Of a stretch of DNA of 64,000 nucleotides, positions 51,206 to 57,555 are shown one piece after another (within the stretch, counting starts at the first letter, position 1; each line of letters opens with the position of its first letter). This DNA comes from Bugula neritina (Eukaryota > Animalia > Bryozoa), in the NCBI GenBank assembly GCA_964035545.1, contig OZ037767.1, forward strand, positions 29,218,628 through 29,282,627, written 5' to 3'. The notes under the pieces were generated by a model that saw only the letters and a list, made by a program, of their open reading frames with translations, was not told the origin of the DNA and did no database searches. A program made the position numbers and the translations under genes.

Positions 51206-54200
51206 ATGTTGACCAGAATTTCAAACAACGCCTTGTGGGCGTACCTTTCCTTTCAAGTTCTGGCATTAGTTTCGAATGCTGCTCCAATAAACAAATTCTA
51301 CAGTACATCTCCTGCAGGTATGAGTATGTATATGTGATAAAATATCTATAGAGTTTATGAAATAATTAAAGATAAAAATCTGCTAGCAAACTACGTATCT
51401 TTGTATTTATGTATCTTAAGTTTTGAGTTTATTTATTTTAAATATTTAAAATACTGTACTTCATTTAGCAATAAAGCGTAACTTTATTCAACCTTTGTTG
51501 CAGACCAGTTATATGTCGAAAAGAGCATATTCATGTTTATCAATTTTATCATTAGCACACGATTGTGCATACTGTAAACCTTTCCAAACCTTTGTTAAGT
51601 CTTATATATAGCCTGTAAATTTTACATAGTTAAACCTTTCATTTGAAGGGAAAAGACAACTTTGAAAATGTGAGCAATATACTCGTATTATTTAATAGCT
51701 GAAACTAGAATGCTGATGTTTTAATGTCAGCTTTAAGTTATATTAGCAGTTAATATTATTACTTTTTCCACTCACTGTGTTGTATTGACTAACTTTCTCT
51801 AACACCGAAAACATTGACTATAGTCAACAACATTGAATAAAGTACCGCATACCTAGTTATATAATAAAGATAGTACTCCGATTTTGTTATATGAAACAAA
51901 GCTAATTATAAAAAGTTATTAATTATTCCATAAAAATAAAATAATTGACATAATTATAAACTGCTATATATAGGAATATAAATCAACCCTTGTGCACTTA
52001 ATCATATACAAAAAATATGTTGTAAACTTGCAATAACATGCATTAAGAACATTGCCTGTTACAGATGATGTCTTGCCACCATGGTATTTAAATGGATGGT
52101 TGATTGCTATGTCTGTGGCTGTAGCTGTTGCCGCCGTAATAACTCTAGCCTGTTGCGCGTGTGGTGCTTGCAACTCAAGAGGTAATAACTCCAAATTTAA
52201 TTGCAAAGTTAGCTGAGTAAATACATAGTTCAACATATTATTATTATGTAGTGATGGACTGACTAGCCATCATGTTTAGATTTAGTTATTTAAGGGCTAA
52301 ATTGACATATGTTTTAGAAGAAGAGCAAGTTCTAGCACATAAAACTTGGGCTTCAAAAACAAAATAAAACTGTAAAATAATCCTTTGAAAATTTTTTCTG
52401 CAGCTGGTAACTAATGTATATCAATTATGTATGCAAAATATGATTTTTCTTGAAATGATGTCACCAATTAGTACATTAATAACTAGTTACTACCTTTGAC
52501 CTTTGACCTAGGGGCCATGAATGCTGACGTCTACCAGAGACACATGCGCCAGATGCGACAGCTAATATTGCAACACAACGCTCCAAGCGCAAAGCCAGAT
52601 GTCACCAAGCTAGCGCAGGATCTTCGTAACTTGGGGGTGGGTGAGAAAGAGGCCCAAGCCGGCTTGTTGACTGTTGGTCAGAGGGACCAGCTGGGCATCA
52701 GAGATGGTGATTTAGAGAAAATAGGTAAGTCACTTTCAGCTGTACTCAATTGCGTTCTAGTAAAACTAAACTAGTTTAAAGTAATATTCAACTATTATAA
52801 TAATATAGTGATACCTATTCAGCATGTAGTGACAGCCATGCAACTAACATATAGTGATACTCAACTAATGTATAGTAATACTCAACTAATGTATAGTGAT
52901 ACTCAACTAATGTAAGATGCTAATTAGCTAACGCATAGTGCTACTTAACTAATGCATAGTGATACTCAACCAACGTATAGTGATATTCAACTAACGTATA
53001 GTGAATCAATGAAATGGAATGACCAAAAGTAGCAATGTTTTACAGGAGGTAAAGAGAACCTATTCAGGACTCTACGACTTTTAGAGCTTCAAGATATTCA
53101 AGACGGTCAGAACGCGAAGCTCTTGCTTGCCAATCGCCCACAGGCTGTTATACGCCAGGTATCATACTTTATCTCTAGGTGTCATACTTTATCTTTAGGT
53201 GTCATACTTTATCTCCAGGTATCATTCTTTATCTTCAGGTGTCATACTTTATCTCTAGGTGTCATACTTTATCTTTAGGTGTCATACTTTATCTCCAGGT
53301 ATCATTCTTTATCTCTAAGTGTCACACTTTATCTCCAGGTGTCATACTTTATCTTCAGGTGTCATACTTTATCTCCAGGTGTCATACTTTCTCTCCAGGT
53401 GTCATACTTTCTCTCCAGGTGTCATACTCTATCATAAAGTGTCGTATATGCTTGTTATCATACATATACTTTTTAAATACTATATTATGTACACTCTTTA
53501 AATACCATAAGTATATACCATTTACATAGTATGAATACACTGCCTTCAAATAGTGAATACTATCAAGAAAGTACTTCAATATAACTGTTACGATGTCAAA
53601 ATAACTGCTCAGCATTAGCTATTCATTTAAAAAATAAAATAGTAAATTATGGAGAAAAGTTGGTGCAATGAAAAGCTACAAGCAATGCCATAAACTCTAG
53701 ATCATTTTTGTTTTACTGTCTGATTTCCTAAAGCCAGCATTTTGAGCATTGTTCTAATAAGTTGATAACATATTTTACAGCAAGGGCCAGCTACACCAGG
53801 TGCTAAAAAGCCAGAGACAAGACCGCAGCCAAATGTTATTATACCCACTGTTCCTCAAGGTAAACTTTTTATCTACCTAATATTTTTAAGGTAGACTTTC
53901 ACTTTATTTGTAGCCCTTAAATTGTATATTATGTAGCTTCCCACTATTTCTACAATAGCTAAAATCAAGAAGATGAACCCGTAAAAAGCTGTTAATAGCA
54001 GTATATCTTATAACACACTTCATCACGTTAATAATAACTGTTGTAGCAATAGCTTTCTTTTAAATGCTGCATGGCTATATAATATAGACTTTAGCTCCTA
54101 AAAGTTTTGAATGCTATAGGATGTGTATTTTGATTCATGACTTACTTGTAAAATAAAGCAAATTTCTTCAAATTCAAAATTTTAAACTGAAATAGCAAAT

Positions 54201-57200: not shown

Positions 57201-57555
57201 TGACGAGTACACCATTTACGACCAAGCTGGACCACAAGCAAGCCCTAACGCTGCGTGCGTGAGACCACAGACAAACGATGGAGGCGTTGGTGTAGCAGTC
57301 ACATCTGATTTTGACGAGTATACGATTTATGACCAACCTGGCCCACAACCGGTTAGAGCACCTCAAGCAAACAGAGGCGCAACTGGTGTAATAAGACCTC
57401 AGACAAACGAAGATGCCGTTGGTTTAACCGGAACATCTGATTTTGACGAATACACGATCTATGACCAAGGGGGTCCAGAGCCAGAGATGGATGAAGACGG
57501 TGCTGGGCTAGGTGTCACGTCTGATTTTGACGAATATACTATTTATGATCAATAA
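51206..57555 (+). CDS. Uncharacterised type I single-pass membrane protein with nine acidic Tyr repeats (putative transmembrane adaptor), ~550 aa
   Basis: Phase-compatible exons: 51206-51317 (signal peptide MLTRISNNALWAYLSFQVLALVSNA-AP), 52065-52181 (TM WLIAMSVAVAVAAVITLA plus CCACGAC), 52512-52724, 53046-53158, 53781-53859 (Pro-rich), 54268-54438, 54527-54637, 54806-54941, 55362-55423, 57017-57555. Total 1653 nt, open to TAA. An extra frame-shifting candidate exon lies at 56037-56151. Probable 3' UTR intron 57575-57956. Confidence 0.88.
52841..53003. repeat. 21-bp minisatellite (CAACTAAYGTATAGTGATACT), ~7 copies
   Basis: Imperfect tandem units in intron 3 of the membrane-protein gene. Confidence 0.88.
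53159..53428 (+). repeat. 20-bp minisatellite (GTGTCATACTTTATCTCCAG), ~13 copies, starting exactly at a splice donor
   Basis: Exact 20-bp period; source of the spurious ORFs at 53179-53615. Confidence 0.95.
54945..55186. repeat. (CT)n microsatellite, ~240 bp
   Basis: Directly visible, starting 3 nt after the donor at 54942. Confidence 0.98.

Follow-up and report, generated by a model that had tools for sequence, protein, structure and literature searches.

A candidate membrane phosphotyrosine scaffold with an exon-encoded tyrosine repeat in the bryozoan Bugula neritina

Transmembrane adaptor proteins (TRAPs) combine a short ectodomain, a single transmembrane (TM) helix, juxtamembrane cysteines and a domain-free tail with tyrosine motifs (PMC3342071). 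The palmitoylated transmembrane adaptors are regarded as a vertebrate, mostly immune-cell, invention, and PAG has an ectodomain of 16 amino acids and Pro-rich SH3-binding sites (PMC3342071). The gene described here lies on the forward strand of a 64-kb window of Bugula neritina DNA (the whole stretch that was analysed, within an assembly of 216,009,554 bases). Its product, about 550-608 amino acids long, is predicted to cross the membrane once in type I orientation, and it is encoded by one gene. The best explanation is that the product acts as a palmitoylated transmembrane phosphotyrosine scaffold, analogous rather than homologous to LAT and PAG, and the chances of this are considered to be about even. 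The exon chain was predicted, and its splice borders and phases were checked by script on the window sequence. All introns of the chain were GT-AG. The exons are as follows (window coordinates; a slash marks an exon-intron border).

51206-51317, forward strand: exon 1 (E1), with the ATG and the signal peptide ..LALVSNA followed by APINK..; leaves phase 1
52065-52181, forward strand: exon 2 (E2), the remaining ectodomain, the TM helix and CCACGAC; ends ..NSR G/gt
52512-52724, forward strand: exon 3 (E3), the basic helical juxtamembrane part
53046-53158, forward strand: exon 4 (E4), the basic helical part continued; its donor lies in copy 1 of a minisatellite
53781-53859, forward strand: exon 5 (E5), the Pro-rich linker (..TRPQPNVIIPTVPQ), with 7 Pro in 26 residues
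54268-54438, forward strand: exon 6 (E6), two repeat cores and one LNDYCIM site; phase 1-1
54527-54637, forward strand: exon 7 (E7), exactly one 37-residue unit (111 nt); phase 1-1
54806-54941, forward strand: exon 8 (E8), one repeat core and LNEYSLI; leaves phase 2
55362-55423, forward strand: candidate exon 8b (E8b), R-QRPHENGAMTSG..; phase 2 to 1, GT-AG borders
56037-56151, forward strand: candidate exon 9 (E9), a degenerate tenth unit, QLNATL..DEISTVYEKV; phase 1 to 2
56503-56561, forward strand: candidate exon 9b (E9b), a basic stretch (PKSRVKSRVRTKVGKRVRLG); phase 2 to 1
57017-57555, forward strand: last exon (E10), five TSDFDEYTIYD[QN] units with Pro/Gly-rich spacers; stop codon at 57553-57555

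The ectodomain extended for about 23 residues past the predicted cleavage site and contained no domain and no Cys. It was similarly short in two related loci, L009 and L024, and is too small for a receptor role. The Kyte-Doolittle profile indicated a single TM segment, with a 19-residue maximum of 2.61 in E2; the next highest value of any exon, 1.35, was that of the signal peptide. The four-Cys cluster CCACGAC directly followed the TM helix, at the cytosolic face of the membrane, and was itself followed by a basic helical juxtamembrane module of about 100 residues. AlphaFold2 modelled five helices for E3 with a predicted local distance difference test (pLDDT) value of 67.6, which denotes modest confidence and was obtained from a three-sequence alignment. 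The last exon was modelled as unstructured from the single sequence (pLDDT of 31). The tail exons together encoded 390 in-frame residues with a net charge of -42, 22 Tyr and no Trp, and this tail of about 390 residues is predicted to be disordered. No Pfam family was detected in any exon by the exon-by-exon scan, including any catalytic or binding domain in the tail. The signal peptide was conserved and had small residues at -3 and -1, and the TM helix had an acidic N-flank and a basic C-flank; hence the predicted topology is shown to be N-out and C-in. All four features (Cys cluster, TM helix, ectodomain and tail) matched the TRAP definition, the Cys cluster at the motif level (PMC3342071). 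A preliminary description of this DNA had already listed the signal peptide, the ectodomain, the TM helix, CCACGAC, the helical segment, the Pro-rich linker and the acidic tail, and had compared the whole with transmembrane adaptors; each of these elements was found at its place, and the comparison of architecture held.

The tail is dominated by a tyrosine repeat. Nine [FL]D[DE]YTIY[DE] cores were located at 54300, 54411, 54610, 54877, 57100, 57199, 57310, 57442 and 57526, and LN[DE]Yxx[MVI] occurred three times (54333, 54532 and 54910). The final repeat was directly followed by the stop codon, and the counts and the ending given in the preliminary description were reproduced. Both patterns occurred nowhere else in the window in six frames over 64 kb. 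A profile of the unit was run against the whole 216-Mb genome and returned nine matches, all within this gene; the last exon had no paralogue in the genome, and the gene is single-copy. The nine cores of eight codons each were compared in all 36 pairs, and the codon differences were 137 synonymous versus 36 non-synonymous. Therefore, it is the peptide and not the DNA that has been conserved, which shows long-standing purifying selection on the repeats as opposed to recent DNA duplication.

The unit was exactly 37 residues (111 nt) in each lineage checked and read [QSM]LNEYG[LVI]xK…GLDxxADFD[DE]YTIYD[EQ]G. Exons carried one or two units, and an intron that bordered a unit interrupted its last Gly codon in phase 1; the 111-nt unit with such Gly borders was seen in four lineages. 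Hence, the copy number can change by exon duplication with the frame intact. The tail is built through duplication of the exon for the 37-residue unit. A full unit contained three invariant tyrosines, in LNEYG-Phi-LK and DFD[DE]YTIYD, and the alignment of seven units had 18 invariant columns. The most conserved positions among 46 distinct cores were G-10, L-9, D-8, A-5, D-4, F-3, Y0, D+4 and G+6; positions -2, +1, +2 and +3 were set by the search pattern and were excluded from this ranking. Overall, about 17 positions were conserved per core (GLDxxADFD[DE]YTIYD[EQ]G), and the consensus of the second half-site across lineages was L-N-E-Y-G-[LVI]-L-K. The five units of the last exon had no LNEY half and were separated by Pro/Gly-rich spacers, and those of loci L011 and L012 looked similar. 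The number of units was nine plus one decayed in the window (E9 being the decayed unit, QLNATL…DEISTVYEKV), four plus one decayed in L002, at least 10 in L009 and at least 12 in L008.

The relatives of the gene were searched in large sequence collections. HMMER with the last exon against 1.84 billion cluster representatives gave seven matches only, all of 80-172 residues and unnamed. Each came from a metagenome assembly in ENA or a run assembly in Logan and was an exon-sized open reading frame (ORF) on a eukaryotic contig. The relatives in a 15-billion-protein collection were all unnamed fragments. The fetched contigs and a unit-alignment scan of JGI/ENA metagenome contigs yielded 23 loci (L002-L024). 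About nine sequence types were distinguished: the window; L002-7 with L023; L008 with L013-17 and L020-22; L009; L010; L011; L012; L018-19; and L024. The contigs that carry the relatives were eukaryotic and unannotated, and their source metagenomes were marine, either host-associated or from biofilms; SAMN08714533 is a biofilm sample of marine origin (PMC6355793). The gene belongs to an unnamed, unannotated and apparently bryozoan-centred family.

The locus L009 carried, on one strand and with the same order and intron phases, a signal peptide, a TM helix, CCxCxxC, a helical part, a Pro-rich part and ten units. Its first exon was signal-peptide-like and left phase 1, and its TM exon contained the TM helix, CCSCAAC and QSR G/gt and matched E2 of the window with an E value of 6e-9 in tblastn. 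Exon 3 ended in ..KIG/gtaag in the window and in ..TIG/gtaag in L009, and exon 4 started in phase 1 with GGKEN.. in the window and GGRQR.. in L009 (exon 2037-2394). The Pro-rich exon of L009 started in phase 0 and left phase 1. In L024, the cleavage region read ..LLALSEG/APIRK.. (the slash marks the cleavage site) compared with ..LALVSNA/APINK.. in the window. The GT donor of exon 1, its exit phase and the mature API[NR]K were kept in L024, and the phase-1 junction gave Asp as in the window. The TM helix and CCACKIC of L024 were fused to the helical part (exons 2 and 3) and were followed by the Pro-rich exon and then the units. The Pro-rich exon was homologous across loci and ended in ..VIIPTV in the window, ..GIILPTT in L009 and ..GIIVPTV in L024. 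The order linking the TM part with the repeats was kept in three species (window, L009 and L024), which argues that both are joined in one gene. Ahead of the Pro-rich exon, L024 also had six tandem QAGPVG hexapeptides in frame (L024:8435-8600), a lineage-specific linker expansion that gave a chance match to Pfam Collagen (3.4e-5, below the cut-off).

The comparison with L009 was also used for the central part of the chain. Since E8 is left in phase 2 and E10 must be entered in phase 1, the chain required at least one of the two phase 2-to-1 exons (E8b or E9b). The form composed of E1-E8, E8b and E10 was phase-compatible and encoded 550 residues, which corresponds to the ten exons and about 550 residues proposed in the preliminary description. 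The phase logic of that proposal was sound, but its exon number was too low by the comparison with L009, which also supported 56037-56151 and 56503-56561. With E9 and E9b added, the chain had twelve exons, 1827 nt and 608 residues, and this predicted twelve-exon model is favoured over the ten-exon model. E8b was homologous to the start of the Pro-rich exon of L009 and L008 (..EGGAMTT.GG..), which was entered in the same phase. The L009 sequence read ..NEYGVLKAE AG/gt and then R-ERKTEGGAMTTQGG.., and the window read ..NEYSLIKNE AG/gt and then R-QRPHENGAMTSG.. in the same phase. The E9/E9b junction of the window, LGSSG-R-PKSR, corresponded to the contiguous LGASGRPKIR of L009, which carried KRVRLG and TKKRVRNPKKG where the window has E9b.

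Two simple repeats were observed in the introns of the gene. A 20-bp minisatellite of 13.9 copies occupied 53155-53433, and its first copy constituted the exon 4 donor. The CAG/GT of this donor was repeated in each copy, which produced a donor-like ladder with 20-nt spacing at the opening of intron 4; splicing at any later copy would change the reading frame. A (CT)120 microsatellite was located at 54945-55186, three bases past the exon 8 donor.

The gene was compared with known families exon by exon: E1-E5 against Pfam, PDB (E3) and the related loci, and the last exon against the large protein database. Full-length annotated homologues of the N-terminal module may have escaped such exon-by-exon searches. 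The Pfam search at E values up to 1 gave only chance-level matches to unrelated families and no homology to LAT, PAG, NTAL, LIME or SIT. In PDB, exon 3 and the last exon had only chance sequence matches, and the last exon had no usable match in the ESM Atlas. The motif strings were not found in the full-text literature, nor was an invertebrate palmitoylated transmembrane adaptor in the literature searched. The earlier statement that no known family could be recognised was thus borne out, with no named match from Pfam, PDB, the Atlas or the 1.84 billion representatives, and the gene looks lineage-restricted, as had been supposed.

In the proposed scaffold, the Cys cluster would be S-palmitoylated and would keep the protein in ordered membrane domains. 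The unit tyrosines may be phosphorylated by non-receptor tyrosine kinases of the Src/Abl or Syk type, which favour an acidic residue in -x-I-Y context, after which one phosphotyrosine reader, or a small set of them, would gather in many copies on the 9-12 identical units. The result would be a multivalent membrane signalling scaffold that is functionally like LAT or PAG/Cbp. RPLPxxP is a textbook class I SH3 ligand. It was present, mostly as tandem pairs, in five lineages (L008, L009, L011, L018 and L024), for example at L009:2789-2860 and 4201-4270 and at L024:8606-8680. L008 and L009 had two pairs each, one ahead of the units and one on a mid-unit exon. In most relatives, the paired RPLPxxP may serve as a docking site for the SH3 domain of a Src-type kinase, by analogy with PAG. 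This element has been lost in B. neritina, where exon 5 retains RPQPNVIIP only and exon 8b only the first third of the mid-unit exon.

The binding motifs assigned to the tail in the preliminary description did not survive the comparison of conserved residues. A YxxM site of the PI3K p85 type was seen at one of the three window sites (YCIM), and the residue at +3 in 14 distinct junctions was L in 10, M in one and V, I and H in one each, giving LNEYG[LVI]LK as the cross-lineage motif; the p85 type was thus rejected. The Nck-type reading of IYDE (pYDxV, where pY is phosphotyrosine) was rejected as well, because Gly occupied +3 in 37 of the 46 distinct units, and one window unit had P there (YDQP). 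One unit had the N at +2 expected for Grb2, and one had the P at +3 expected for Crk.

Three observations weigh against a phosphotyrosine scaffold. The sites read pY-T-I-Y, pY-D-[QE]-G and pY-G-Phi-L (the last with N at -2), and no canonical SH2 class fits them. Neither [RK]xxPxxP nor PxxPx[RK] was present in any forward frame of the window at 50500-58200, and the absence of RPLPxxP weakens the argument for SH3 docking in B. neritina itself. The conservation of about 17 residues, with invariant F, G, L and D, exceeds what SH2 docking needs and could mean a phosphorylation-independent reader; it suggests, from the sequences compared, a contact longer than a plain SH2 pocket, or overlapping readers.

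The main rival explanation starts from this conservation and is held to be rather unlikely. The units would be phosphorylation-independent linear motifs (YxxPhi and the acidic-aromatic DFD[DE]Y) bound by trafficking or cytoskeletal readers, and the protein would be a sorting or anchoring platform. The readers would be, for example, AP complexes, the ear domains of adaptors or some other peptide-binding domain. YG[LVI]L fits YxxPhi, and the lack of a conserved SH2 consensus agrees with such readers. However, one sorting signal is normally enough, and an array of 9-12 identical copies, each with three invariant Tyr in strongly acidic surroundings, is what one typically sees in kinase substrates. 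Moreover, the paired RPLPxxP of the relatives point to SH3-bearing kinases or adaptors.

A bolder proposal, for which the prospects are poor, is that bryozoans independently evolved an immunoreceptor-style chain. The Tyr spacing across the unit borders, YTIY-x7-YG[LVI]L, is that of an immunoreceptor tyrosine-based activation motif (ITAM), and the first half-site has Tyr at +3. A tandem-SH2 kinase of the Syk/Shark type, or another protein that recognises the 17-residue core, would bind the array of ITAM-spaced Tyr pairs. If true, the gain of the signal would be tuned by copy number, which ranges between species from about 5 to at least 12, and allorecognition and larval settlement are examples of where this might matter. 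A canonical ITAM chain was rejected; the first half-site is non-canonical, the last-exon units have no second half, and the TM helix is uncharged, with no D, E, K or R in the window, L009 or L024.

It is very improbable that the TM part and the repeat part belong to two genes, or that the intermediate exons are wrong, so that no TM-anchored repeat protein exists. In favour of this reading, exons 8b, 9 and 9b are small and owe their identification to phase logic, and the database entries are only exon-sized ORF fragments. Against this, L009 has the same order, strand and matching intron phases, and L024 has the same order with exons 2 and 3 fused. The exon 5-to-6 phase fits, exon 6 has no preceding start codon that would give a plausible N-terminus, and the junction peptides at E8/E8b and E9/E9b are homologous. 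Least credible of all is an extracellular acidic tail (type II), Tyr-sulfated or cation-binding with an adhesion or matrix role: Asp/Glu-flanked tyrosines are also good sulfation sites and bryozoans secrete adhesive and skeletal matrices, but this reading was rejected on the conserved N-terminal signal peptide with its small -3/-1 residues and mature API[NR]K, on the TM flanks, which agree with the positive-inside rule, and on the Cys cluster at the C-terminal end of the TM helix, where cytosolic acyltransferases act, the tail being cytosolic in any reading that retains exon 1.

The window has a G+C content of about 32%, and is AT-rich and intron-rich. Upstream, exons of a KCNQ (Kv7) potassium channel gene (about 44660-49520, forward strand) adjoin the repeat gene on the same strand and show the pore with TIGYGD, an IQ-like helix and the KCNQ C-terminal domain (Pfam 9.3e-17). 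The exons described here were considered as an extension of this channel gene, and the idea was rejected because exon 1 starts with an ATG of its own and encodes a signal peptide that is conserved. No KCNQ trace was found 5' of the gene in the homologous loci L024 and L009. Downstream, a multi-exon gene on the minus strand (about 59000-63700) sits tail-to-tail with the repeat gene. It was matched exon by exon at the same position in L002:2987-9044 with 34-60% amino acid identity; L002 is thus taken as the ortholog from a fairly distant relative, since the downstream gene is common to both. The ORFs of this gene at 58658-58948, 60788-61093 and 63370-63642 matched no Pfam family above the curated cut-off. 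Further upstream, a single-exon ORF of 199 residues (18455-19054, minus strand) contained an NGF-family cystine-knot domain (Pfam NGF 1.4e-22, Spaetzle 1e-7) and is a bryozoan neurotrophin-like gene. An exon-sized ORF at 1723-2073 (minus strand) had an immunoglobulin I-set domain (1.2e-7) and was part of another gene. A second long CT/GA tract was located at about 29326-29806, where the GC skew was -0.38.

A conserved, unannotated lophotrochozoan family built in this way would mean that membrane phosphotyrosine scaffolds arose convergently. The 9-12 identical units form a natural multivalent array whose number differs between species, and the 17-residue core GLDxxADFD[DE]YTIYD[EQ]G offers a clean bait with which to search for the reader. 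A chromosome-level genome exists for B. neritina (PMC11480708), and therefore the scaffold hypothesis is directly testable.

The known systems resemble the gene to different extents. Repeated acidic x-I-Y-[DE] sites in membrane-associated disordered regions are found in nephrin (YDxV), Tir of enteropathogenic Escherichia coli, Chlamydia Tarp and CagA (EPIYA). In contrast to nephrin and Tir, the residue at +3 is here Gly and not Val or Pro, which departs from the Nck-type consensus. The ITAM chains (DAP12, FcR-gamma and CD3-zeta, and Draper in insects) likewise have a signal peptide, a tiny ectodomain and one TM helix, and an ITAM-like Tyr-to-Tyr distance of 11 is found across the unit borders. 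The first half-site is YxxY instead of Yxx[LI], however, and there is no TM charge and no ectodomain Cys for dimerisation; five units, those of the last exon, are without the LNEY half. LAT, NTAL (LAT2) and LIME share the overall design and the multivalency provided by several phosphotyrosine sites of the same type on one tail. Their sites are YxN for Grb2/Gads, whereas here only one unit of the nine has N at +2. The protein described here is not homologous to them, and its far longer tail has repeats encoded by exons. PAG/Cbp (PAG1) has a short ectodomain, one TM helix, a juxtamembrane Cys motif, a long domain-free tail and tyrosines in acidic context, as in the predicted protein. Its Pro-rich SH3 sites are paralleled by the paired RPLPxxP of the relatives, the B. 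neritina copy being without canonical SH3 ligands. Compared with PAG, to which no sequence similarity was detected, the protein adds a cleavable signal peptide, CCxCxxC and a conserved helical module, and PAG has unique Tyr sites where the tail described here consists of identical 37-residue units. By this analogy, the functional kind would be a known one, that of PAG/Cbp and the LAT-type adaptors, and the new element would be the exon-encoded tri-tyrosine unit in an unannotated family.

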